A DNA stretch of 14,995 nt from Selaginella moellendorffii (Eukaryota > Plantae > Lycopodiophyta). Position 1 is the first letter of the stretch. Each line of letters opens with the position of its first letter. The notes below the pieces were generated by a model. The model was given only the letters and a program-made list of their open reading frames with translations, was not told the DNA's origin and searched no databases. Made by a program: the position numbers and the translations under genes. The stretch is taken from assembly GCF_000143415.4 (NCBI RefSeq), contig NW_003314534.1, forward strand, positions 1 through 14,995, written 5' to 3'. This document shows positions 1 to 14,995 of this stretch, in pieces.

Positions 1-470
1 CTAATAATGCCTCTCAACTCTACATTATTAACAGCACTACACAATTGGGCACCATAGATGGAACAGGAGTAGTACAAACGATTACATCTTGGTCAGCCAA
101 ACTATTCTTTAATAATGTGGTGTATTGTTTAGATTTTTCCTTGACAAAATGGTGAATGAAAGTTAGCCATTGATATTTTTTCTTTGTTTCTTTGCAATGG
201 CAGGGAATTCCAAGAGTTCTTGACCGCCTCATGTCTGACTAGGATGCATATGCTACTTACAACACTCCTATCAACAACCAGAATCACGACCAAGTCATGC
301 CAGCATGGGTGCCCGACTTTGCCCAACAAGTCCAAGAGCTTTAGAATGCACTGCCCACGACCACTGATACTGAGGTCAGCTGACTGATTGACATGCTCAC
401 ACAGCAGCATAGGAGTATCTCTCAGTTCACTCCCACCACCCCAACTGGATGCTTTCCTAGATTGCACTGG
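1..470 (+). pseudogene. Degenerate spliced coding remnant of unknown family, copy A
   Basis: Frame ..NSTTQLGTIDGTGVVQTITSWSAKLFFNNVVYCLDFSLTKW, then a candidate 52-bp GT..polypyrimidine..CAG intron (152-203), then GIPRVLDRLMSD*DAYATYNTPINNQN. Contains stops and indels; family not recognised. Confidence 0.35.
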
Positions 471-1062
471 TGGGACAAATTATAAAACTTTTTAATATCA
501 TAAGTTTATTGCATTAAACTAATTAATAAAGTGGCAGCAATAAACATTCTATTTTGCCCATGACAATGATGCAAGCAATAATCACAATGACTAAGACTAT
601 GTATGTCTCATGACTATGTGAGCAACCATCCTTCTAACAACACAGTTGTCTGCAAAATTGATAACCTACATAGACGTACCTTTGGTCAGTATACCCATGG
701 TTTATTTGTATCAGCAATGGACCTACACAATCCATAATAATTCCGTTAAAACTCTGGTGCCAAGCAATTTAGTGTCAAGTTTTTACCAAGACCGTGTAAA
801 ACTCGAGTTTCACTGAGACCAGTTCTTACCATCAAAACCAAGGTCGTCATCATCTACACACAGAAAAGATGATTTTGACGGCTCTAGACAAGCCCGGTAA
901 AAGAAAACTTCCGAGACGACTTGGCAGCAAACAAATCAGATTGTGTTACGCGGACAGCAAGAGTAAAAAAATGAAATAGAAGGGAAGAGAAGACCGTGTA
1001 CCTAAAATCGTGCACGATTCACGACGAAGTCATCCAAAGGACCTCGCCTCCCCTCCTCCGGC

Positions 1063-1069
1063 TATAAAA
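1063..1069 (+). promoter_or_regulatory. TATA box of germin-like gene A
   Basis: cTATAAAA ~50 bp upstream of the signal-peptide ATG (1120); conserved in copy B. Confidence 0.7.
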
Positions 1070-1119
1070 TGCCTGCCCCTCCCTCATATAGCTCCATCAG
1101 TCTTTTCCAAGCTCGCAAG

Positions 1120-1785
1120 ATGGCTCATCTTCGTTTTGTTCTATCCTTCCTCCTAGCAATCAGCTCCATCTTGTTTGTGCATGCCGCGGATGAAGATATG
1201 CTGCAGGACTTTTGCGTTGCAGACAATGGCTCCAAGATCAAAGTGAACGGCGTGGTCTGCAAGGCGGCCGCCGATGTGAAAGCCGAGGACTTCAAGTCGA
1301 GCCTGCTGGCAACTCCCGGGAACACCGACAACAAGCTCGGCTCCAACGTCACGCTGGCGAGTGTCAACAATTTCCCCGGTCTCAACACCTTTGGTGTAGC
1401 TTTTGCCCGCGTCGACTATGCTCCTGGCGGCACCAATCCCCCCCACGTCCATCCCCGAGGATCCGAGCTGCTCTTCCTCGTGCACGGGAACCTCTTAGTC
1501 GGATTCGTCACCACCTTGCCGGACAACAAGCTCTTCGCCCAAATGCTCTATCCTGGAGATCTGTTCGTCTTCCCTCGGGGACTCGTCCACTTTCAGCTTA
1601 ACGTTGGAAAGGAGCCTGCGGTTGCGATGGCTGGCTTCAACAGCCAAAACCCCGGGGCGACTCAGGTGGCCAAGGCGGTGTTTGATTCCAATCCTCCAAT
1701 CAACGACGACGTGATCGCGAAAGCGTTCCAGATTGACGACCGTGGTCTCATCCAGAAGTTGAGAGAGCTCATCGGCATGACTTGA
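1120..1785 (+). CDS. GLP: Germin-like protein (cupin), secreted, intronless, 221 aa; copy A
   Basis: Signal peptide MAHLRFVLSFLLAISSILFVHA; box A QDFCVAD; box B GGTNPPHVHPRGSELL; box C GDLFVFPRGLVHFQLN, together giving the His/His/Glu/His Mn ligands; second N-terminal Cys (VCK); AFQID tail. ATG 1120 is preferred because ATG 1069 overlaps the TATA box. Confidence 0.97.
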   Translation: MAHLRFVLSFLLAISSILFVHAADEDMLQDFCVADNGSKIKVNGVVCKAAADVKAEDFKSSLLATPGNTDNKLGSNVTLASVNNFPGLNTFGVAFARVDYAPGGTNPPHVHPRGSELLFLVHGNLLVGFVTTLPDNKLFAQMLYPGDLFVFPRGLVHFQLNVGKEPAVAMAGFNSQNPGATQVAKAVFDSNPPINDDVIAKAFQIDDRGLIQKLRELIGMT

Positions 1786-1959
1786 AAGTTTCTCCAAAGG
1801 TTGCGAGGCTGACTTGACTAAGTTACATATATAAATAAATTATTTTTCCAAAGCTCTTACCTTTCGGAAACTTTCGTAAGCACAGCTAGATAGAATAAAA
1901 AACAAACACATCGCTTTCCCGCCAATTTCCATTTTAAACACGCTCCTGGAGCGATTTGC

Positions 1960-2260
1960 CAGGACATACGTCGATCCAATGCCCGAAATATATCGTAATG
2001 CGATCGGCAAGATGCCACCAAAACCCTACAAACCAGAGCATCCGGCACAAACGGCATGGCACGCAGCAATTCCTTGGCATTCTCCAGTTGCCTGTGCCTG
2101 GTGCGATCCTAAAATCCCCTGTCACGAGAAGAAAGAAATCCTTGTTGCGATTCACGGAGCTGATGTAGGCGCAGGCCGGAGTGTCACCTTCCACGCTCCC
2201 ATCGAGGACTTTCTCGCCCTCGCCACAATGAGCAAACGCAGTGATCCCTTTATGCAGCAT
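1960..2260 (-). pseudogene. PLS/E-class pentatricopeptide repeat remnant, copy A
   Basis: ITAFAHCGEGEKVL (P-motif-like), KDFFLLVTGDF, and LENAEELLRAMPFVPDALVCRVLVASCRSHYDIFRA (S2/E1-like). Frameshifted; lacks the 31 bp encoding CMIDIFGRG that copy B retains. Confidence 0.85.
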
Positions 2261-2684
2261 TGTAATGGGCTAAAGGTGATACTGTAGTTAAGTGAGGTCC
2301 ATGATCTTTCAAGGGAAAGACCAAAACTACACCTTGCCAACTCACCCAAGCCCTCTCTAACCCTCAAGCATGTGTTAGAAGGGACTTTTGGCAAGATGAC
2401 AAAGTATCTCCTTTAGCCTACTTTGAGAGGATTTCGGGATTTACCTGGACGTATTTGAGTGTGCTGCATATAATAATCAAGTGGCTGGACATGAGAAGGT
2501 TCTGTATGGCTCTATCAGGAGAGGCACAGAGAATGTTTGTTTCATGCTGTGCACGAGATCAGATTGTTTGGTGGGATGAAGCAGCGGACTCGATTTCCAG
2601 GCTGTTGTGATGTTCAATTAAGATTGCATTATCGAGATTGAAATCACAAGAACATGGAAAGAACTGGACGTGTCTCTCAGCGTG

Positions 2685-3025
2685 GTGCGTGTGTCGTCCG
2701 GGAATTAATCTTGTGATGTTTGCTCAAGGCGATGCAGCCTTGATTGTTGCAGTAGATTGGTGTTGGGCCGGGTGTCGTTGAGGAGGCGGCAAAGCCAGAT
2801 GGCCTCTTTGCATGCGGAACTAGCCTCCGCCTCACAGCCGGAGCAGGCAAGGACGCTCTGCTTCTTGCTGCCAACTGCATTGTGAAGGCTAAACAATTTA
2901 GCCAAAGCCAGCCCAGTAAGCTTGACTTGTGGCCTTAAGACCGTAAGAAAACGTATCTCGGAAGTACCAAAAGACTCGTTTAAGTGCTTGCCAATGTTGA
3001 GGTCCAGGATTGTCAAGGGTTCTTG
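2685..3025 (-). mobile_element. Ty1/copia remnant: RT C-terminus plus RNase H, copy A
   Basis: LDNPGPQHWQALKRVFWYFRDT (~2954-3019; cf. copia NP..HW.A.KR.LRYL.GT), then SKKQSVLACSGCEAE..ACKEAIWLCRLLND, then shifted frame PTPIYCNNQGCIALSKH..SRTTH (cf. IYCDNQ.AI.L.KN...H.RTKH). Deletions and frameshifts. Confidence 0.9.
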
Positions 3026-3060
3026 CACAAAGTGGAATTCGAATGGATTAGCGCACCTTC

Positions 3061-3370
3061 CATGGCGTCCATATCCCCTCTATAACTAGAAAAAAAACAC
3101 ACTCCAACAAGCGAACGAAGCATTTTCCTAGGCTATGGCATTGAACACAAGGCTTACAAGGTCTACAATCCTGTCTCCAAGGCGCTGATCATCTCACCAA
3201 ACGTGCATTCCAATGAGACTCCATCACGTCAAGTGGGAGAAAATCTGCCTTTGCCAGTGCTGCCCAATACCCAATCCGAACGACCTGCGAATCTTCAAGA
3301 CTCACTGCAGCCGCTCCTCTTTGCAGATCTTCTCGCCAGAACAAGGGCAAGCCACCACCACGGCTGATTG
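3061..3370 (+). mobile_element. Ty1/copia remnant: integrase C-terminal SH3-like region plus linker, copy A
   Basis: VHIPSITRKK, then shifted frame IFLGYGIEHKAYKVYNPVSKALIISPNVHSNE (~3119-3217), matching the copia VHIP...RKKL...CIFLGY....K.YR.Y.P...IIISRDV.F.E pattern. Confidence 0.85.
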
Positions 3371-3678
3371 CTCGCAGCTGTACAAGACATCCCTGAAAGT
3401 CTTGTGGAGACATTACTTGCTGGAGTGGAACTTCTGGGAATTCCACGCAGCTCTCAAGTCAAGGAAAAATGGAAAGTTGCCTTTATCATTCCCCTTCACC
3501 TTGGTGAGACAAGCGCCTCCTGGACGCAAGCTGGGTAAATTGATGTGTGACTGTAATGGGAGGGAGCGGAGGTGGGGAAGAATGGGGAAAGGAGTGGAGG
3601 TGGAGGATTTGGAGGAGAATTCGCCGCCAGATGGAAAGAGCCTTGCATGACGTGTCAGCCACGTGGCTGTCCGCCACT

Positions 3679-3921
3679 TCAATTATCGTGGCAGCACCCG
3701 GAAGGGCCGGGAGCTGGCGTGGGCTGACCCTGGGTGAGCATTCTCCGGGAGGTTCTTTCGAGAAGAGTGTGGATCTTTTTAACAACAGGAAAGTGCAATT
3801 CGGAATTGAAAAGCTCGCCCTGCTGGCTCATCACCGAAAACGAGCCCGGCCTGCAACATTCGATGTTGCCGCTGATCATGATCACCAATGCGATGGCAAG
3901 AAGTATCTTTCCACGATTCAT
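3679..3921 (-). CDS. Putative small secreted signalling peptide precursor (IDA/PIP/CTNIP-like C-terminus), 80 aa; copy A
   Basis: MNRGKILLAIALVIMISGNIECC-RP signal-peptide pattern, variable middle, C-terminal RRMLTQGQPTPAPGPSGCCHDN*. TATAAAA ~100 bp upstream. Frame preserved without indels for 77 codons in copy B. Confidence 0.7.
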   Translation of the reverse strand: MNRGKILLAIALVIMISGNIECCRPGSFSVMSQQGELFNSELHFPVVKKIHTLLERTSRRMLTQGQPTPAPGPSGCCHDN

Positions 3922-4019
3922 TCCAGCCACAAAAGCACTAAACATAGTGATGATATCGTTGTATAAGAACCAAGAGCCGTGCTTGCTCCGATACAATTGG
4001 ATCCAATGGGCCTCCACTG

Positions 4020-4087
4020 TTTTATATTCACACAAACAGCACCGGGCTTGGTAAACAGTCAAGTCCTTTGCGCGTGCCATCTGTCAA
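4020..4087 (-). promoter_or_regulatory. TATA box and W-box elements upstream of peptide gene A
   Basis: Minus-strand TATAAAA at 4020-4026, TTGACT at 4057-4062 and TTGACA at 4082-4087; all retained in copy B. Confidence 0.5.
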
Positions 4088-4392
4088 AATAAGAATCGTT
4101 AGCTTCCAAGCCAGAACACTATATGGGCAGTTTTTCAAAGTCCTGCACAAAAGACAGCTCGCCATTTGAAGTCTATAAGCTCTTGGTAGCAAATTACCTG
4201 TTCCGTGTATGTCGGATTTCAAGGCAGCCTTGGCGCAACTTTGCGTGGGCCAAGAGCATGACCTGACCACGCAAATCTACAAAAGACGCTAGATTTGCAT
4301 CATGCAGCCAAGGAGCAACTTAGAAATCTATCACGAAAAAGAAAATAAAATCTTAGAACTTTCTAAGACAACACCCTTTCTAAGAATGTCCT

Positions 4393-5840
4393 TTAGACTA
4401 GTCTGAAACCCCACCGCATTCGCACTTTTCAATGTTGTCCAGCGCGAACTGAGCCGGATAAACGTGGTAGCACGGCTCCATCGTCTCCCTCACTGAGCAA
4501 ACCACGCTCTGGTCGCACACGAACTGTACGGGCCTCACGCCCGCCAGCCCCGCCGCCGAGTAGCCAAACGTGGATGGCGGGCTCGTCACCAGGACATCGC
4601 TCATCGACAGCAAGTAGATCTCCATCACCGCCTGTGCGTCGTGATCCAAGTTCCCCGTGTTTTGCACGCCCTCCACGCTCGGCTGGTGGATGGACACCGA
4701 GGAACCGTCCGCTAGATCGTATCCCAGCACCTTGCTCTTGAGCGTCTCCGAGTACTGCGAGTTGAGTGACACCACCAGCACCGCCACCTTCTTGCTGTTC
4801 TTCCTCACCGACGATCTGGGAGCTCGCTCCTTGGGTGGTGTTTGTGAGCGCGCCTTCCACCAGGCAGTCGAATGTATCCTCGGCGAGGTTGGGTGGCGAG
4901 AACCAGATGTGGTTTCGCAGCTGGACCCCGACTAGAAGCTCGGCCTGCCTGGGCCACGTACGCGTCGTAGTACCTGGCCGCCTTGTCCCACACGAAGTCA
5001 CTGGGAAGCAACAGGTACCTCACCAGGAGATGGAAGATGGCCTCCTGCTGTGGGAACCATTCCTCGAGCTTGCTCCCTGAAAGCCGGGACATTGTAGAGC
5101 GCCGGAGTGATGTACTGGCCGGAGGAGAGGACGATCCACCGCGCGCTGGAGTTGAGAGCTTGCTGTTGATCTTGGCAGAAGAAGGCCTTGTCCTGGTCCC
5201 TGTAGTTGTAATCGAGATAGGCCACCACCACCTCGGGGAAGCTCACGTCGACGCCGCGGCTGCAGTTGGGCGATCCCGCCAGGCTTCCAATCCACTTGGA
5301 GGCGTCCCACGGCGCCAACTCGAGGTGCTTCCAGCTCGACGGCAGCAGCCAGGAGCTGGGTGGAAACGGCTCGCAGAAGAGCGTGTCCAGGTTCTCCAAC
5401 CTCGCGATCAGCATCGTCCTGTCGGTGAGCAGCGCGTAGAGAAACGCTGCTACTGTAGCCACCATCTTGTTGCCGATCCCCTGGTTGGCGGGAACGTAGA
5501 CGAGGTAGCTGCATGTACTATAGTTCGCGCACTGCTCGGGCCCCGGAGCGCACCTCCCGTGCAAAGCCTCGTACTCTAGGATTTTCCGTTGGAGCGACTC
5601 GGATGGCTCGAAGCTCGCCGATCTTCGGCGGCTGTAGAAGTCGTACTCGTTCCTACTCCTGCAAGAGTCGCTGCCGTTGTAGCTTGTGGTGTTGTTGCTG
5701 ATGCGGAAGTTTGATCCCAGAGTTCGGCTCCGGGACATCATTGCGGAGTCGGAATTTACGTCGAGAATCCATACGAGTAGCAGTGCCGCAGCGGAGAAGA
5801 GGAGCACGAAGAACAGCAAGCTCGGGCTGTAAGTTTTCAT
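4393..5840 (-). pseudogene. FUT: Xyloglucan galactoside 2-alpha-L-fucosyltransferase (GT37, FUT1-like), intronless, four 1-bp frameshifts; copy A
   Basis: Type II anchor MKTYSPSLLFFVLLFSAAALLLVWIL; GIGNKMVATVAAFLYALLTDR; FCEPFP.SSWLLP; IFHLLVRYLLLPSDFVW; VGVQLR; AVLVVSL; HQPS; EIYLLSMSDVLVTSPPSTFGY; MEPCYH; GFRLV* (TAA 4393-4395). Frameshifts at ~5076, ~4943, ~4831 and ~4411. Confidence 0.93.
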
Positions 5841-6129
5841 CCTCCGATCCTGGAAAGTTTTTCTTCGCCGCCTACCGAACTCCAAAGCCTCAATGCAAAA
5901 AATTCCTCTTAGTTGGTGATGGTGATTACCAACCTGGAGATCAGAAAGAATTAAGATTTGAGCAACTAAGAAACAATTCCGTGGCTCACCATGTGGACGG
6001 GACACGTGACCAAATACTCGAGACAAAGAAGGAAGTCACGGCTCCAGCCAATTGGCTTGTCGCCACCTTCCTCACCATCTTTCTGGTGGAGTCTCACGGT
6101 ACTGGGATGAGAGTGGTATCCAAGGATCC

Positions 6130-6600
6130 TCCACATGAGCTTGCCTGGAGCTGTCCTTCAAACTGTTCTCCGTGAGCTCTTTGTTGCTATTCGACCGTAA
6201 CAGGGTTTCCACCACTTAGTCCTTCAGAACCATCCCCTTCAACCGGTTCTCCGAGAGATCCGAGCAAACTCAAAGAGTCTGCCCAAGCTGAGAGACATGA
6301 TAGGGCCCACACGAGCTCCTCCCAAACGTTGTTCGAGCACTTCCAAGCCCGCACACCCATTTGGATGGCTGAGAGATGTAGAGCCGAGAATGACATTCCG
6401 GAGATTGCTGCTGGACGGGGGAGTGAGACTGTTGAAGAGCTCCTGGAGAGCCACGCAGTTGCGAAAGATCCCATCGTGCCAAAGGCCTAGCAGCTCGATG
6501 TACCCCCGAGAAGGACGAGCCAGAGATCATGTTGCCGGCTCGTGATCGTCCAGCTGAACTGATTCCCTGACATGTCTAACACCCTGAGCAGTTCCCTCTA
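6130..6600 (-). pseudogene. Degenerate plant extracellular-type LRR gene remnant (LRR-RLK/RLP-like), copy A
   Basis: Fragments across frames fit LxxLDLSxNxLxG: LRVLDMSGNQFSWTI (~6544-6588), AGNMISG, DGIFRNCVALQEL-FNSLT, GCAGLEVL, SLSLL/DLSENRLKGMV (~6228-6275), ELTENSLK. No transmembrane or kinase sequence recognised. Confidence 0.75.
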
Positions 6601-6904: not shown

Positions 6905-7830
6905 TCACGTCACAAACGCCACAACAGCTTTCCACCGCTCCAATTCATTCTCGCCTTTGCAGCCCCCCTAGCAAACGGGCTGTCCAAACGCTCGGCCTAC
7001 GTCCCAGCTACATGCCTGTAAAGTGAAGAGAATATTAGCAATCTTAACAGCGAGAGTTCACCTTGAAGTTGACTTGGTCAGATTTTTTAAGAACTTCGAT
7101 TATGTCGTTGTTGAAGAGATTGTCAAAAAGGCCATCAGTTCCCAAAACAATGATGTCCCCCTTGCAGACAGGGATCTTGAATTCCTGTAAACGGAAAATT
7201 AGCGAAGTTAAGGGAAAAGCAAGAGTACCTCTGCAACCGTCGGATGGTCACCAAATGTTCCAACTTGAAACGGAAAGTTAAAACTATGCTGCATGGGCTC
7301 CGAGCTTGCAACTACTTGCCAATTGCGAACTATGATGAACCCAAGTCTCCCAAGTTTGCTGCGTACATGTCTGAAATATATGACCCGACTCAGCCTCAAA
7401 CATCAAATCCGACTAGCTTACTTGCTCAAACAATGCAGCCACAAGGACCGTTGCTGATCCCTGGGCCTTTGTACTGCCGGCGGCTTTGACAAGCACGTCC
7501 TTGGGGTCCGGTTTCCCTTTGCTGTTTACAACCAATGCCTTACAGTGTCCCATAAGCTCCCGAGAATACATCCCCGAATCAATGCCTGAAAACCAGTAAA
7601 AACTCTTTTGAAGAAACAGACTCAAAGAAAGATTTGTCTTACCTTCTCCGGCCCAGCCCCCAGAACCATCAGCAACACCCATCCAGGAGCCTTCTGTGAC
7701 GAAGGCATCTTCACCCCCTCTTTGAGCCTGTAAACAGCAAAGCTTAGAAGATCTACAAAAATTAGCAAGTAAGCTTTGCACCTTCTCAGGATGGGGACGC
7801 ATCGCCGCAGCATAGTCGAGTCGAAGCAAC
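6905..7830 (-). pseudogene. PP2C: PTC7-type protein phosphatase 2C, six recognisable exons, disrupted
   Basis: Exons 7830-7782 (RPHPEK), 7727-7643 (GGEDAF..GVADGSGGW), 7585-7422 (GIDSGMYSRELM..GSATVLVA), 7370-7229 (ANLGD/GFIIVR..QHSFNFPFQVG; 142 nt, two bases short), 7184-7062 (GDIIVLGTDGLFDNLF), 7015-6905 (DSPFA..GGKL/VVAFVT*; DDIT deleted). All introns are GT-AG. Further 5' exons probably extend to ~8176 but are unresolved. Confidence 0.92.
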
Positions 7831-8249
7831 CTTAAAAGCAAGAACACCATGAATTTCACCAATAGCCACGCGAAACGTAAACAAGCTCACTGGCTGGTAG
7901 AATCCGTTTCAGCATTCTGGCACCCTTGCAAGCTTAAGACTTCAGTATATAGAGAAGGAAAGAAAAATTGCAAACCTCTTCGCCATTTTTGCAAGCCGAG
8001 TTGTGTGTCTTGGCCGGTTGTGGGAGGGAAACAGCCGATTCATCGAAAGTAACATGCGTTGTCTCTTCGGGCGCTTCAAGAGATAGAGAGATCAGCAACA
8101 CGTCACCAAAAATTCCAAGCTACATTCTTACCTCGCGTACTTAAAGAAGGAGAGGACGTTGCTCGTTGTGAGCCATGATCTGCGGTAAACTTGCGTGATT
8201 AGTGCTTGGATCTTATTTTCTTTCCTCGCAGAGAGTTGATTCCACTGGT

Positions 8250-8900
8250 GGACAAGGCATGGGTTATGGATATGGGTGGGACTTTGGTTGAGCAGCTAAA
8301 TTCTACTCTCTAGTTCGTGGAATGTTACTCTTAAGATAAAACTATACACTGACCGATCAAACCAGTGAGACTGGCTGGGCAATTAAACGTTTTTAACATT
8401 GCAACGGACTTCGCAGGCTCAACTAACAACAGCGGAAGGGCTCCTGGAACCAGGCAGCAGCGGAGGACATCCACATGACTAATGGCGCCTCCCAACTCTA
8501 CATTGTTAACAGCACTACACAATTGGGCACCATAGATGGAACAGGAGTAGTACAAACGATTACATTTTGGTCAGCCAAACTATTCTTTAATAATGTGGTG
8601 TACTGTTTAGATGGCGGGGAATTCCAAGAGTTCTTGACCGCCTCATGTCTGACTAGGATGCATATGCTGCTTACAACACTCCTATCAACAACCAGAACTC
8701 ACTGTGGTCACGACTAAGTCATGCCAGCATGGGTGCCCGACTTTGCCCAACAAGTCCAAGAGCTTTAGAATGCACTGCCCACGACCACTGATACTGAGGT
8801 CAGCTGACTGATTGACATGCTCACACAGCAGCACAGGAGTATTTTCTCAGTTCACTCCCACCACCCCAACTGAATGCTTTCCTAGATTGCAATGGTGGGA
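8250..8900 (+). pseudogene. Degenerate coding remnant of unknown family, copy B (more 5' sequence visible)
   Basis: MTNGASQLYIVNSTTQLGTIDGTGVVQTITFWSAKLFFNNVVYCLD, DAYAAYNTPINNQNSLWSRLSHAS and PAWVPDFAQQVQEL in shifting frames. Lacks 64 bp present in copy A (134-197). The 5' limit is approximate. Confidence 0.3.
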
Positions 8901-9492
8901 CAAATTATAAAACTTTTTAATATCATAAGTTTATTGCATTAAACTAATTAATAAAGTGGCAGCAATAAACATTCTATTTTGCCCATGACAATGATGCAAG
9001 CAATAATCACAATGACTATAACTATGTATGTCTCATGACTATGTGAGCAACTATCCTTTTACACAGTTGTCTGCAAAATTGATAACCTACATAGACGTAC
9101 CTTTGGTCGATATACCCATAGTTTATTTGTATCAGCAATGGACCTACACAATCCATAATAATTCCGTTAAAACTCCACACATAAAAAGTCTCTGGTAGAA
9201 GAACAAAGCAATTTAGTGTCAAGTTTTTAAAACCGTGTAAAACTCGAGTTTCATTCTGACCATCAAAACCAAGGTCGTCATCATCTACACACATAAAAGA
9301 TGAATTTGACAGCTCTAGACAAGCCCGGTAAAAGAAAACTTCTGAGACGACTTGGCAGCAAACAAATCAGATTGTGTTACGCGGACAGCAAGAGTAAAAA
9401 ATGAAATAGAAGGGAAGAAAAGACCGTGTACCTAAAATCGTGCACGATTCACGACGAAGTCATCCAAAGGACCTCGCCTTCCCTCCTCCGGC

Positions 9493-9499
9493 TATAAAA
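9493..9499 (+). promoter_or_regulatory. TATA box of germin-like gene B
   Basis: cTATAAAA, identical to copy A. Confidence 0.7.
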
Positions 9500-9549
9500 T
9501 GCCTGCCCCTCCCTCATATAGCTCCATCAGTCTTTTCCAAGCTCGCAAG

Positions 9550-10215
9550 ATGGCTCATCTTCGTTTTGTTCTATCCTTCCTCCTAGCAATCAGCTCCATC
9601 TTGTTTGTGCATGCCGCGGATGAAGATATGCTGCAGGACTTTTGCGTTGCGGACAATGGCTCCAAGATCAAAGTGAACGGCGTGGTCTGCAAGGCGGCCG
9701 CCGATGTGAAAGCCGAGGACTTCAAGTCGAGCCTGCTGGCGACTCCCGGGAACACCGACAACAAGCTCGGCTCCAACGTCACGCTGGCGAGTGTCAACAA
9801 TTTCCCCGGTCTCAACACCTTTGGTGTAGCTTTTGCCCGCGTCGACTATGCTCCCGGCGGCACCAATCCCCCCCACGTCCATCCCCGAGGATCCGAGCTG
9901 CTCTTCCTCGTGCACGGGAACCTCTTAGTCGGATTCGTCACCACCTTGCCGGACAACAAGCTCTTCGCCCAAATGCTCTATCCTGGAGATCTGTTCGTCT
10001 TCCCTCGGGGACTCGTCCACTTTCAGCTTAACGTTGGAAAGGAGCCTGCGGTTGCGATGGCTGGCTTCAACAGCCAAAACCCCGGGGCGACTCAGGTGGC
10101 CAAGGCGGTGTTTGATTCCAATCCTCCAATCAACGACGACGTGATCGCGAAAGCGTTCCAGATTGACGACCGTGGTCTCATCCAGAAGTTGAGAGAGCTC
10201 ATCGGCATGACTTGA
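9550..10215 (+). CDS. GLP: Germin-like protein (cupin), 221 aa; copy B, protein identical to copy A
   Basis: Same motifs as copy A. Only three differences seen, all synonymous (1221/9651, 1311/9741, 1425/9855). Confidence 0.97.
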   Translation: MAHLRFVLSFLLAISSILFVHAADEDMLQDFCVADNGSKIKVNGVVCKAAADVKAEDFKSSLLATPGNTDNKLGSNVTLASVNNFPGLNTFGVAFARVDYAPGGTNPPHVHPRGSELLFLVHGNLLVGFVTTLPDNKLFAQMLYPGDLFVFPRGLVHFQLNVGKEPAVAMAGFNSQNPGATQVAKAVFDSNPPINDDVIAKAFQIDDRGLIQKLRELIGMT

Positions 10216-10395
10216 AAGTTTCTCCAAAGGTTGCGAGGCTGACTTGACTAAGTTACATATATAAATAAATTATTTTTCCAAAGCTCTTACCTTTCGATAG
10301 TGGAAACTTTCATAAGCACAGCTAGATAGAATAAAAAACAAACACATCGCTTTCCCGCCAATTTCCATTTTAAACACGCTCCTGGAGCGATTTGC

Positions 10396-10710
10396 CAGGA
10401 CATACGTCGATCCAATGCCCGAAATATATCGTAATGCGATCGGCAAGATGCCACCAAAACCCTACAAACCAGAGCATCCGGCACAAACGGCATGGCACGC
10501 AGCAATTCCTCGGCATTCTCCAGTTTCCTGCCACGGCCGAAGATATCGATCATGCAGACCCTGCCTGGCGCGATCATAAAATCCCCTGTCACGAGAAGAA
10601 AGAAATCCTTGTTGCGATTCACGGAGCTGATGTAGGCGCAGGCCGGAGTGTCACCTTTCCCATTGCGCCCTCGCCACAATGAGCAAACGCAGTGATCCCT
10701 TTATGCAGCA
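10396..10710 (-). pseudogene. PLS/E-class PPR remnant, copy B
   Basis: VCMIDIFGRGRKLENAEELLRAMPFVPDALVCRVLVASCRSHYDIFRA matches CMVDLLGRAG.L.EAE.LI..MPF.PD...W..LL..CR.H.D..RA. Truncated, with its own deletions near 10660. Confidence 0.88.
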
Positions 10711-11129
10711 TTGTAATGGGCTAAAGGTGACACTGTAGTGAAGTGAGGTCCATGATCTTTCAAGGGAAAGACCAAAACTACACCTTGCCAACTCACCCGA
10801 GCCCTCTCTAACCCTCAAGCATGTGTTAGAAGGGGCTTTTGGCAAGATGAGAAAGTATCTCCTTTAGCCTACTTTGAGAGGATTTCGAGATTTACCTGGT
10901 ATTTGAGTGTGCTGCATATAATAATCAAGTGGCTGGACATGAGAAGGTTCTGTATGGCTCTATCAGGAGAGGCACAGAGAATGTTCGTTTCATGCTGTGC
11001 ACGAGATCAGATTGTTTGGTGGGATGAAGCAGTGGACTCGATTTCCAGGCTGTTGTGATGTTCAATTAAGATTGTATTATCGAGATTGGAATCACAAGAA
11101 CATGGAAAGAACTGGACGTGTCTCCCAGC

Positions 11130-11460
11130 GTGGTGCGTGTTTCGTCCGGGAATTAATCTTGTGATGTTTGCTCGAGGCGATGTAGAGTAGATTGGTGTTG
11201 GGCCGGGTGTCGTTGAGGAGGCGGCAAAGCCAGATGGCCTCTTTGCATGCGGAACTAGCCTCCGCCTCACAGCTGGAGCAGGCAACGACGCTCTTCTTCT
11301 TGCTGCTAACTGCATTGTGAAGGCTAAACAATTTAGCCAAAGCCAGCCCAGTAAGCTTGACTCGTGGCCTTAAGACCGTAAGAAAACGTATCTCGGAAGG
11401 ACCAAAAGACGCGTTTAAGTGCTTGCCAATGTTGAGGTCCAGGATTGTCAAGGGTTCTTG
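11130..11460 (-). mobile_element. Ty1/copia remnant: RT C-terminus plus RNase H, copy B
   Basis: DNPGPQHWQALKRVF; SKKKSVVACSSCEAE..ACKEAIWLCRLLND; SRTKH. Confidence 0.9.
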
Positions 11461-11494
11461 CACAAAGTGGAATTCGAATGGATTAGCGCACCTT

Positions 11495-11800
11495 CATGGC
11501 GTCCATATCCCCTCTATAACTAGAAAAAAAACACACTCCAACAAGCGAACGAGGCACTTTCCTAGGCTATGGCATTGAACACAAGGCTTACAAGGTCTAC
11601 AATCCTGTCTCCAAGGCGCTGATCATCTCACCAGACGTGCATTCCAATGAGACTCCATCACGTCAAGTGGGACAAAATCTGCCTTTGCCAGTGCTGCCCA
11701 ATGCCCAATCCGAACGACCTGCGAATCTTCAAGACTCACTGCAGCCGCTCCTCTTTGCAGATCTTCTCGCCAGAACAAGGGCAAGCCACCACCACGGCTG
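11495..11800 (+). mobile_element. Ty1/copia remnant: integrase C-terminal SH3-like region, copy B
   Basis: VHIPSITRKK, then TFLGYGIEHKAYKVYNPVSKALIISPDVHSNE. Confidence 0.85.
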
Positions 11801-12147
11801 ATTGCTCGCAGCTGTACAAGACATCCCTGAAAGTCTTGTGGAGACTTTACTTGTTGGAGTGGAACTCCTGGGAATTCCACGCAGCTCTCAAGTCAAGGAA
11901 AAATGAAAAGTTGCCTTTATCATTCCCCTTCACCTTGGTGAGACAAGCGCCTCATGGACGCAAGCTGGGTAAATTGAAGGGAGCGGAGGTGGGGAAGAAT
12001 GGGGAAAGGAGTGGAGGCGGAGGATTTGGAGGAGAATTTGCCCCCAGATGGTGTCCCCAGAGTGACGTGTCAGCCACGTGGCTGTCCGCCCCTTCAATTA
12101 GCCAAATAATGGTGGTATTGAAATGACAAAATCGTTTTAGGAAAATG

Positions 12148-12393
12148 CTATGGTTGGTGGCGGCAGCACCCGGAAGGGCCGGAGGATGGCGTGGGCTGAC
12201 CCTGGGGGAGCATTCTCCGGAAGGTCCTTTCGAAAAGAGTGTGGATCTTGTTAACAACAGGAAGGCGCAATTCGGAATTGAAAAGCTCGGCCTGCTGGCT
12301 CATCGCCGAAAACGAGCCCGGCCTGGAACAATCGATGTTGCTGCTGATCATGATCACCAATGCGATGGCAAGAAGTATCCTTCCACGATCCAT
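12148..12393 (-). CDS. Putative small secreted signalling peptide precursor (IDA/PIP/CTNIP-like C-terminus), 81 aa; copy B
   Basis: MDRGRILLAIALVIMISSNIDCS-RP signal-peptide pattern; C-terminal RRMLPQGQPTPSSGPSGCCRHQP*; TATAAAA at 12491-12497. Confidence 0.7.
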   Translation of the reverse strand: MDRGRILLAIALVIMISSNIDCSRPGSFSAMSQQAELFNSELRLPVVNKIHTLFERTFRRMLPQGQPTPSSGPSGCCRHQP

Positions 12394-12490
12394 TCCAGCC
12401 ACAAAGCACTAAACGTAGTGATGATATCGTTGTATAAGAACCAAGAGCTGTGCTTGCTCCGATACGATTGGATCCAATGGGCCTCCAGTG

Positions 12491-12563
12491 TTTTATATTC
12501 ACACAAAAAGTTCTCCACCGGGCTTGGTAAACAGTCAAGTCCTTTGTGCGTGCCATTTGTCAA
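12491..12563 (-). promoter_or_regulatory. TATA box and W-box elements upstream of peptide gene B
   Basis: Minus-strand TATAAAA at 12491-12497, TTGACT at 12533-12538, TTGACA at ~12558-12563. Confidence 0.5.
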
Positions 12564-12832
12564 AAAGACTCGTTAGTTTCCAAGCCAGAACACTATACGA
12601 GCAGTTTTTCAAAGTCCTGCACAAAAGACAGCTCGCCATTTGAAGTCTATAAGCTCTTGGTACCAAATTACCTGGATTTCAAGGCAGCCTTGGCGCAACT
12701 TTGCGTGGGCCAAGAGCATGACCTGACCACGCAAGTCTACAAATGACGCTAGATTTGCGTGATGCACCCAAGGAGCAACTTAGAAATCTATCACGAGAAA
12801 GAAAATAAAATCTTAAAAGCTTTAAGAACTTT

Positions 12833-14321
12833 CTAAGACAACATCCTTTCTAAGAACGTCCTGTAGACTAGTCTGAAACCCACGCCGCATTCGCACTTTT
12901 CAATGTTGTCCAGCGCGAACTGAGCCGGATAAACGTGGTAGCACGGCTCCATCGTCTCCCTCACCGAGCAAACCACGCTCTTGTTCTGGTCGCACACGAA
13001 CTGCACGGGCCTCACCCCCGCCAGCCCCGCCGCCGAGTAGCCAAACGTGGATGGCGGGCTCGTCACCAGGACATCGCTCATCGACAGCAAGTGGATCTCC
13101 ATCACCGCCTGTGCGTCGTGATCCAAGTTCCCTGTGTTTTGCACCCCCTCCACGCTCGGCTGGTGGATGGACACCGAGGAACCGTCCGCTAGATCGTATC
13201 CCAGCACCTTGCTCTTGAGCGTCTCCGAGTACTGCGAGTTGAGCGACACCACCAGCACCGCCACCTTCTTGCTGTTCTTCCTCACCGACGATCTGGGAGC
13301 TCGCACCGACGATCTGGGAGCTCGCACCGACGATCTGGGAGCTCGCTCCTGGGTGGTGTTTGCGAGCGCGCCTTGTTGCACCAGGCAGTCGAACGTATCC
13401 TCGGCGAGGTTGGGTGGCGAGAACCAGATGTGGTTTCGAGGTATGCGTCGTAGTACCTGGCCGCCTTGTCCCACACGAAGTCACTGGGAAGCAACAGGTA
13501 CCTCACCAGGAGATGGAAGATGGCCTCCTGCTGTGGGAACAATTCCTCGAGTTTGCTCCTGAAAGTCGGGACGTTGTAGAGCGCCGGAGTGAAGTACTGG
13601 CCGGAGGAGAGGACGATCCACCGCGCGCTGGAGTTGAGAGCTTGCTGTTGATCTTGGCAGAAGAAGGCCTTGTCCTGGTCCCTGTAGTTGTAATCGAGAT
13701 AGGCCACCACCACCTCGGGGAAGCTCACGTCGACGCCGCGGCTGCAGTTGGGCGAACCCGCCAGGCTCCCAATCCACTTGGAGGCGTCCCACGGCGCCAA
13801 CTCGAGGTGCTTCCAGCTCGACGGCAGCAGCCAGGAGCTGGATGGAAACGGCTCGCAGAAGAGCGTGTCCAGGTTCTCCAACCTCGCGATCAGCATCGTC
13901 CTGTCGGTGAGCAGCGCGTAGAGAAACGCTGCTACTATAGCCACCATCTTGTTGCCGATCCCCTGGTTGGCGGGAACGTAGACGAGGTAGCCGCATGTAC
14001 TACAGTTCGCGCACTGCTCGGGCCCGGAGCGCACCTCCCGTGCAAAGCCTCGTACTCTATGATTTTCCGTTGGACCGACTCGGATGGCTCGAAGCTCGCT
14101 GATCTTCGGCGGCTGTAGAAGTCGTACTCGTTCCTACTCCTGCAAGTGTCGCTGCCCTTGTAGCTTGTGGTGTTGTTGCTGATGCGGAAGTTTGATCCCA
14201 GAGTTCGGCTCCGGGACATCATTGCGGAGTCGGAATTTATGTCGAGAATCCATACGAGTATCAGTGCCGCAGCGGAGAAGAGGAGCACGAAGAACAGCAA
14301 GCTTGGGCTGTAACTTTTCAT
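12833..14321 (-). pseudogene. FUT: GT37 xyloglucan fucosyltransferase pseudogene, copy B
   Basis: Same GT37 motifs as copy A. Lesions: 1-bp deletion at ~14024; ~37-bp frameshifting deletion at ~13439 removing VAQA.ELLVGVQL; 21-bp triplication; TAC (12863-12865) where copy A has TAA, extending the C-terminus by 10 aa. Confidence 0.93.
13283..13345. repeat. 21-bp perfect tandem repeat x3 within FUT copy B
   Basis: (caccgacgatctgggagctcg)3 encodes (RAPRSSV)3 on the minus strand; copy A has one unit at ~4806-4826. Confidence 0.97.
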
Positions 14322-14609
14322 CCTCCGATCCTGGAAAGTTTTTCTTCGTCGCCTACCGAACTGCAAAGCCTCAATGCAAAAAATTCCTCTTATTTGGTAA
14401 TGGTGATTACCAACCTGGAGATCAGAAAGAATTAAGATTTGAGCAACTAAGAAACAATTCCGTGGCTCACCATGTGGACGGGACACGCGACCAAATACTC
14501 GAGACAAAGAAGGAAGTCACAGCTCCAGCCAATTGGCTTGTCGCCACCTTCCTCACCATCTTTCTGGTGGAGTCTCACGGTACTGGACGAAAGTGGTATC
14601 CAAGGATCC

Positions 14610-14995
14610 TCCACATGAGCTCGCCTGGAGCTGTCCTTCAAGCTGTTCTCTGTGAGCTCTTTGTTGCTATTCGACCGTAACAGGGTTTCCACCACTTAGT
14701 CCTTCAGAACCATCCCCTTCAACTGGTTCTCTGAGAGATCCAAGCAAACTCAAAGAGTCTGCCCAAGCTGAGAGACATGATAGGGCCCACACGAGCTCCT
14801 CCGAAACGTTGTTCGAGCACTTCTAAGCCCGCACACCCATTTGGATGGCTGAGAGATGTAGAACCGAGAATGACATTCCGGGAGTTTGCTGCTGGACGGG
14901 GGAGTGAGACTGTTGAAGAGCTCCTGGAGAGCCACGCAGTCGCGAAGATCCCATCGCGCCAAAGGCCTAGCAGCTCCATGTACCCCCGAGAAGAC
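14610..14995 (-). pseudogene. Degenerate LRR gene remnant, copy B (cut by window end)
   Basis: DCVALQEL-FNSLT, GCAGLEVL, DLSENQLKGMV and ELTENSLK in shifting frames. Confidence 0.72.

Follow-up and report, generated by a model that had tools for sequence, protein, structure and literature searches.

In a germin array of Selaginella moellendorffii lies a reading frame of only 80 codons whose conceptual product resembles the precursor of a secreted peptide signal. Is it a gene and, if so, to which family of plant peptides does it belong? The initial annotation of this 14,995-nucleotide stretch (the window; the whole of scaffold GL377838.1, assembly GCA_000143415.2) proposed a signalling peptide of a new type, with two copies in the window. 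Our analysis suggests that the frame is probably a real, unannotated gene, and comparison of the predicted proteins indicates that it fits no known peptide family, being neither IDA/IDL, nor PIP/PIPL, nor CTNIP. The best explanation we can offer is that germin arrays carry a genuine, hitherto unannotated family of secreted SGPS-core propeptides that is specific to this lineage, a reading we would place about midway between acceptance and rejection.

The reading frame and its transcript

Both proposed frames, the 80-residue protein and its 81-residue twin, are present, and both are on the minus strand. Copy 1 is a single exon of 80 codons plus stop (3679-3921, minus; ATG 3921-3919, stop 3681-3679), hidden, as had been said, within a longer call of 133 amino acids (3679-4080, minus). 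Copy 2 has 81 codons plus stop (12148-12393, minus; ATG 12393-12391, stop 12150-12148).

The layout described earlier, a basic N-terminus, hydrophobic core, C(C/S)-R-P, Arg-Arg and Pro/Gly/Ser-rich tail, was confirmed throughout by the sequence. The N-terminus reads MNRGK or MDRGR in the window copies and is followed by a hydrophobic core of 11 residues (mean Kyte-Doolittle hydropathy 3.3-3.55), after which comes C(C/S)-R-P. A heuristic check predicts a signal peptide over codons 1 to about 22 of copy 1 (3856-3921, minus), with a positive n-region, the 11-residue core (mean hydropathy 3.55) and a short polar c-region; by the -3/-1 rule, cleavage is likely after G18 or C22. At only 13 residues, the uncharged run in copy 1 is too short to span a membrane. 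The Arg-Arg at codons 59-60 (3742-3747, minus), invariant in the alignment of the eight distinct family proteins (A3), is a candidate processing site. Beyond it lies a C-terminal region of 20 residues rich in Pro, Gly and Ser (3682-3741, minus), in which an SGPS-type core with invariant QPTP and GPS is followed by a hypervariable tail of 6-7 residues.

The proposed check of RNA coverage gave a positive answer: three runs (X1, X2 and X3) cover the ORF with unspliced contigs over 2661-3907, and both window copies are represented. Some contigs have 0 mismatches to copy 1 over 3567-3907, a copy-2-type contig is found in run X3 (record 27), and one further contig represents a third haplotype whose three differences are all non-synonymous. 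The neighbouring GT37 xyloglucan-fucosyltransferase-like gene (4357-6500 and 12833-14507, minus) is transcribed and spliced, and its 56-nt intron (5932-5987, GT..AG on the minus strand) is removed in the RNA, which shows that the libraries are real RNA and not DNA carry-over.

If the transcript over the ORF comes from the minus strand, the ORF would be its 5'-most reading frame, with about 1 kb of 3' UTR after it. The initial annotation had given the ORF a TATA box of its own, and two TATA-like boxes are found on the minus strand. The nearer, TATACAA, lies 44 nt upstream of the ATG (3959-3965, minus; 12430-12436 in copy 2), within the 100 nt of flanking sequence that vary least, and a start about 30 nt below it would fall at about 3925-3935, implying a 5' UTR of about 10 nt. 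The second, TATAAAA, is about 105 nt upstream of the ATG (4020-4026, minus) and is apparently unused in the libraries examined, as depth over 3944-4311 is zero in X1, X2 and X3 and also in a fourth run of unspecified type, X18. Across the family the 100 nt upstream of the ATG are the best-conserved flank, with 8 of 100 columns variable against 37 of 222 in the ORF core. A perfect palindromic G-box, GCCACGTGGC, and an adjacent ACGT element are found in all copies 12-30 nt beyond the stop (3648-3667; 12063-12082 in copy 2). This conserved G-box may belong to the 3' UTR or be a regulatory element. Most of the other copies have a second GACACGTCA element, which has been lost from both window copies. 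An Rfam search of 2400-4400 found no RNA family.

The same data accommodate a second explanation, that this is a non-coding chance ORF in an unspliced intergenic or long non-coding transcript, copied with the germin repeat. The RNA contigs are undirected, and those listed reach no further than 3903-3907, leaving a gap of 14-18 nt to the ATG. Several frames are open at the locus, and looking for peptide-precursor-like ORFs in the S. moellendorffii genome entails heavy multiple testing. On the other hand, random sequence seldom produces a signal-peptide layout of this sort: under a crude, post hoc rule, signal-peptide-like ATG ORFs occurred at 0.17 per random 15 kb and the full precursor layout in 0 of 200 random windows.

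Conservation of the frame across germin arrays

Both window copies lie within a tandem segmental duplication of 6.5 kb (1-6513 and 8487-14993, 93-97% identity). They come from one duplication event and are therefore not independent, so that the pair, correctly reported before, does not amount to independent conservation. Besides the ORF, each repeat unit contains a germin-like cupin gene (1069-1785, plus), a non-genic stretch of about 2 kb and the GT37 gene (minus). Divergence within this unit peaks in the ORF, at 7.9% compared with 2.4-4.3% in most flanks. Copies 1 and 2 differ at 17 of 231 aligned ORF positions, with 15 non-synonymous and 2 synonymous changes, and CpG transitions make up only 4 of 19 changes. 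The endings differ through a 57-nt indel, and copy 2 owes its ending, RHQP, to this insertion after the Cys-Cys codons. Gene conversion is evident among the copies (0.4% divergence in germin, 2-8% in the flanks), and the resulting mosaicism can explain why the ORF has diverged two to three times as much as its flanks.

BLAST with the ORF region found eight further copies in five 20-kb loci from the germin arrays on GL377681.1 and GL377682.1. With the window on GL377838.1 this makes ten copies at 9-10 loci, encoding eight distinct proteins. All ten are intact, with 78-81 amino acids and the same ATG, and every copy found is linked to a germin gene, one per germin repeat unit of about 8.4 kb. 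They are recent paralogues or alleles, with divergence up to about 10%. Copy 1 is identical to the copy at position 288066 of GL377682.1 (100% over 581 nt), and copy 2 is closest to copy A280 on GL377681.1; these matches make the small scaffold GL377838.1 either a mosaic or a redundant part of the larger arrays, perhaps a haplotype. The ORF is absent from the public gene calls at the germin-array loci examined, and exact look-ups of its forms in the public protein collection returned nothing, while the neighbouring germin, read from its second Met, is present there. Read as a peptide-hormone precursor in the initial annotation, the ORF does behave like a real small gene, being transcribed and belonging to a family of eight intact proteins.

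The case for selection rests mainly on indels and control ORFs, since in a substitution-only neutral simulation on the tree all eight ORFs stay open 20% of the time. We aligned nine copies of a 2.75-kb unit and took as controls every other ATG ORF of copy 1 with 60 codons or more, nine in all. These controls are intact in 0, 1, 0, 4, 1, 1, 1, 1 and 0 of the eight other copies, whereas the candidate survives in all eight. The alignment contains 93 gap blocks, 67 of them frameshifting, while the three indels inside the ORF (9, 3 and 57 nt) are all multiples of 3. The longest stretch free of frameshifts measures 299 nt, ahead of others of 201, 170 and 161, and brackets the ORF, beginning 13 columns ahead of the ATG and ending 41 past the stop. 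At 0.023 per nt, 5.6 frameshifting events would be expected in 243 nt (Poisson probability of none about 0.004), and about 3 would be expected even on the part of the tree outside the path joining the window copies (W1-W2).

Two other coding frames at the locus were considered and rejected. Coding on the plus strand (ORFs of 139 and 143 amino acids) is broken in all eight other copies and has a GC3 of 0.52, and the N-terminal extension of the 133-residue call is intact in none of them.

Base composition points the same way and substitution patterns do not. GC3 in the candidate frame is 0.64-0.68, against 0.68-0.80 in the germin and GT37 genes, 0.50 in the surroundings and 0.52 in the antisense ORF; codon-usage log-likelihood, trained on two genes, was uninformative. 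A codon model gave an omega of 1.95, which compared with omega = 1 yields 2dlnL = 3.3 (1.64 log-likelihood units, p ~0.07), so positive selection on the ORF is suggestive only. Mean pairwise pN/pS was 1.2, and variable sites at codon positions 1, 2 and 3 numbered 14, 12 and 11. Residues are unconstrained on average, and variability is even across signal, pro-region and tail.

A chance ORF would account for an omega of about 1.2-2, the lack of third-position excess and the uniform variability, as it would for the ORF being the most diverged part of the repeat, unannotated and so far without homologues in word-index and HMMER searches. The one in five simulations in which all copies stayed open also favours it, and on this view the frame would have been kept open by the youth of the copies and by a chance lack of indel-prone sequence in this piece. 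It does not sit easily with the decay of the control ORFs (0-4 of 8 intact) beside a candidate intact in 8 of 8, nor with the absence of frameshifting indels, both over the whole tree and outside the W1-W2 path. The gene-like GC3, which is confined to the candidate frame, and the conserved ATG and upstream TATA region also argue against it. We regard a chance ORF as unlikely, but as a rival to be taken seriously. A preserved frame with freely changing residues suits a young secreted peptide gene that evolves fast better than it suits a non-functional ORF. If the family is real, it shows that comparing array copies, through frame-preserving indels and the decay of control ORFs, can tell small genes in tandem arrays from chance ORFs. 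If it is not real, the lesson is one of caution, that ORFs with a signal peptide and a Pro-rich tail readily mimic peptide precursors in GC-rich DNA.

The initial annotation had expected the signal region and the C-terminal motif to be conserved more than the spacer. This is not the pattern observed: variable positions number 8 of 23 in the signal, 12 of 35 in the pro-region and 6 of 16 between Arg-Arg and GPS, although the copies are too young for the comparison of C-terminus and pro-region to be decisive. Invariant in all eight proteins of alignment A3 are the hydrophobic core, C22, R24-P25, S27-F28, ELFN-EL and HTL-ERT and, towards the C-terminus, R59-R60-M61, Q66-P67-T68-P69 and G72-P73-S74. 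The core is SGPS at six of nine loci and PGPS at three (W1, A307 and B321), with GPS invariant.

Following GPS, the final 6-7 residues are hypervariable and fall into two kinds, one reading GCCHDN, GCCHDK or GCCRHQP and the other EDNHDHD, EDNHHHD, EDNNDRD or EDNHDHH. Five of the nine loci end in EDN(H/N)(D/H)(H/R)(D/H) and have no Cys in the tail, and Cys is present in four. The vicinal Cys-Cys and the H-x-N ending to which attention had been drawn are thus present in the window, but they are not features of the family. The two kinds of tail differ by five substitutions within 9 nt and a 3-nt indel, and their distribution departs from the core tree, which points to exchange between paralogues.

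Comparison with known peptide families

Searches of several kinds returned no relative. Neither copy 1 nor the 8-member alignment retrieved a homologue in word-index protein searches, and an HMMER profile run against 1.84 billion representative proteins gave none either. The two HMMER matches were spurious: a 256-residue protein with a repeated TKDHPVPSPVPDFCCQ unit, a low-complexity or repeat artefact, and a bacterial surface protein, also an artefact. Pfam gave no match for the candidate at E up to 10 with both ORFs and their tails; the EPIP string of AtIDA (22 residues) was also unmatched, so these negatives are probably uninformative as to IDA. In the literature, the string of the peptide core turned up only in an unrelated animal paper. 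In a language-model atlas both copies fall among small plant proteins, including IDL5 (0.89-0.90), CLE_plant and GLV clusters (0.86-0.90 overall, up to 172 shared features), and the top cluster for copy 2 carries Pfam IDL5 (0.90, 172 shared features), while a neighbouring control ORF reached 0.69 with unrelated families. The placement is a resemblance of layout and not proof of kinship. The atlas 'recognition' value, 2077-2108, falls short of 2300, a level that 91% of known-family proteins attain.

The precursors from which post-translationally modified peptides derive are small, occur as paralogues, and have a signal peptide, a pro-region that varies and a C-terminal mature peptide that is conserved more strongly (PMC4526919, Vie et al.). 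The present family shows the paralogues, the small size, the predicted signal peptide and a C-terminal Pro-rich motif. IDA/IDL precursors have a conserved Arg behind the signal peptide and, directly after the S(G/A/V)PS core, (R/K)(R/K)HN, whose C-terminal His-Asn anchors the peptide to its receptor (PMC4526919, PMC8462819); PIP/PIPL precursors have the same core with GxGH, an ending also found in CEP, at the extreme C-terminus (PMC4526919). CTNIPs carry two Cys 9-11 residues apart, both required for HSL3 binding and activity (PMC9191895, Rhodes et al.).

The family resembles the IDA/IDL peptides, the ligands of HAESA and HSL2, in several respects. The proteins are about 80 residues long, with a heuristically predicted signal peptide in all eight, then a conserved Arg (R24), a variable pro-region, a C-terminal Pro-rich motif and a short variable extension after it. 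They share the S(G/A/V)PS core, PTPPSGPS here against PIPPSAPS in AtIDA (PMC8462819, PMC4526919). Unlike IDA/IDL peptides, all eight have EDNH, GCCH or GCCR after the core in place of (R/K)(R/K)HN and so no His-Asn anchor, three loci have PGPS instead of SGPS, the motif is no more constrained than the pro-region, and no sequence homology was detected with the HMMER profile or the word index. PIP/PIPL peptides, the ligands of RLK7, are alike in their signal peptide, conserved Arg and SGPS core near the C-terminus (PMC4526919), and unlike in their terminal GxGH, which is absent from all eight proteins. CTNIP/SCREW peptides, the ligands of HSL3/NUT, are also released from small secreted precursors, and four of the nine loci here have a C-terminal Cys beside GPSG. 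These Cys are adjacent, however, and not 9-11 residues apart, other loci have Asp-Asn instead, and CTNIPs have been reported from angiosperms only.

The proposal of an IDA-like frame combined with a CTNIP-like motif and a vicinal Cys pair therefore fails, as (R/K)(R/K)HN, GxGH and the spaced Cys are all absent; the more general proposal of a new SGP-type family holds as a hypothesis, with an SGPS core close to that of IDA/IDL and PIP. The premise that these families are known mainly from seed plants is dated. Putative SmIDA1-3 peptides with a conserved C-terminal His-Asn have been described in S. moellendorffii, which also has three HSL-clade receptors (PMC8462819, Furumizu et al.), so IDA-type ligands are not new in this species.

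Could the ORF nevertheless encode a true but divergent IDA/IDL member, a ligand of Selaginella HAE/HSL receptors that possibly overlaps SmIDA1-3? The IDL-type motif, which we take to be L-P-K-G-V-P-I-P-P-S-G-P-S as quoted in the initial annotation, is matched at 9 of 13 positions by the copies with PTPPSGPS. The conserved Arg after the predicted signal peptide, the IDL5 cluster at the top of the atlas list for copy 2 and the three HSL-clade receptors (PMC8462819) favour the idea too. A match at 8-9 of 13 positions to one of many motifs is by our estimate not rare in a Pro/Gly/Ser-rich tail, and HMMER detects no similarity to any IDA/IDL protein. None of the eight proteins ends in (R/K)(R/K)HN, and EDNH, GCCH or GCCR amounts to a charge reversal without the His-Asn anchor that the published SmIDA peptides keep (PMC8462819). 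Membership of IDA/IDL is thus very unlikely. SmIDA1-3 and the loci of the present family are probably different genes.

The lineage-specific family of secreted SGPS-core propeptides that we favour would work like an IDA- or PIP-type modified-peptide precursor without belonging to either family. It would be a young family of single-exon genes, so far found only in S. moellendorffii, encoding pre-propeptides of 78-81 residues. The protein would enter the ER by its N-terminal signal peptide, cut at about residue 18-22, and a propeptide of about 58 residues would be secreted. A second cleavage, the probable work of a subtilase, would take place at the Arg-Arg (59-60) or after it, by analogy with IDA perhaps just before Gly 65, and would release a Pro-rich peptide of about 16-20 residues whose QPTP..GPS core is likely to be hydroxyprolinated. 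Its last 6-7 residues would come in two fast-changing forms, Gly-Cys-Cys-His... or Glu-Asp-Asn-His-Asp..., and its most likely site of action would be extracellular, with a role as ligand or defence peptide.

A gene that is translated but makes no receptor ligand would also explain much of this. Germin-like proteins bind Mn, and the ORF could encode a small secreted protein of recent birth, de novo or fast-evolving, under relaxed or diversifying selection, for example antimicrobial or metal-binding, amplified with these Mn-binding genes. Cys, His, Asp and Glu abound in its tails, it belongs to an orphan family always linked to a germin gene, and its frame is kept while its residues are free, with omega near or above 1. 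The hypervariable, bimorphic tail, with five substitutions in 9 nt and tail types that do not follow the core tree, would also suit such a protein. Metal binding and antimicrobial activity are, however, conjectures from tail composition; the language-model neighbours are peptide-hormone precursors, and the invariant elements, namely QPTP..GPS, Arg-Arg and the Arg behind the signal peptide, conform to the layout that has been published for precursors of modified peptides. We therefore think a non-ligand protein quite unlikely.

A more specific form of the secreted-propeptide reading would be a lycophyte-specific SGPS-core family with a bimorphic, fast-diversifying C-terminal determinant, co-amplified with germin-like defence genes and supplying ligands or decoys for Selaginella HSL-clade receptor kinases. 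We consider this unlikely; were it true, the family would represent a solution to C-terminal anchoring independent of that in seed-plant IDA (HN) and PIP/CEP (GxGH). How IDA-, PIP- and CEP-type ligands and HSL-clade receptors diversified in non-seed vascular plants is an open question (PMC8462819). If the family is real, an unannotated peptide family is added to a key non-seed vascular plant, and its core of SGPS, kept while the receptor-anchoring C-terminus has been replaced, offers a natural test of which parts of a ligand are essential.

Neighbouring genes and repeats

The germin-like cupin genes of the two units (1069-1785 and 9499-10215, plus) differ at 3 of 717 positions, all synonymous, and the germin 3' flank (1751-2000) is only 0.4% diverged, compared with 2-8% in the rest of the duplicated unit. 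Such closeness suggests that gene conversion, or else very strong constraint, operates in the array. The same 221-residue germin protein is encoded at at least seven places on the three scaffolds.

The ORF itself matches no transposon protein, an origin that the initial annotation had raised against its own proposal, and no terminal repeats bracketing it were found. By eye, translations of about 2677-3400 look like degraded pieces of Ty1-copia (RNase H, minus strand; integrase-RT linker, plus strand) and a LINE-like fragment. Protein searches, PDB and the atlas did not confirm this copia/LINE reading of 2677-3028 (minus) and about 3090-3400 (plus), and we set it aside. The transposon-like stretch nevertheless lies under the RNA contigs.

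The spacer between the repeat units contains an ORF of 149 amino acids (7413-7862, minus) that by eye looks like a fragment of a PP2C/SpoIIE-type phosphatase (GGEDAF...GVADGSGGW). It has no Pfam match; at locus L002, a called gene nearby has weak SpoIIE/PP2C Pfam matches. The GT37 gene is missing from the public gene calls listed for scaffold GL377838.1, and its second copy carries a threefold APRSSVR repeat that distinguishes it from the first.
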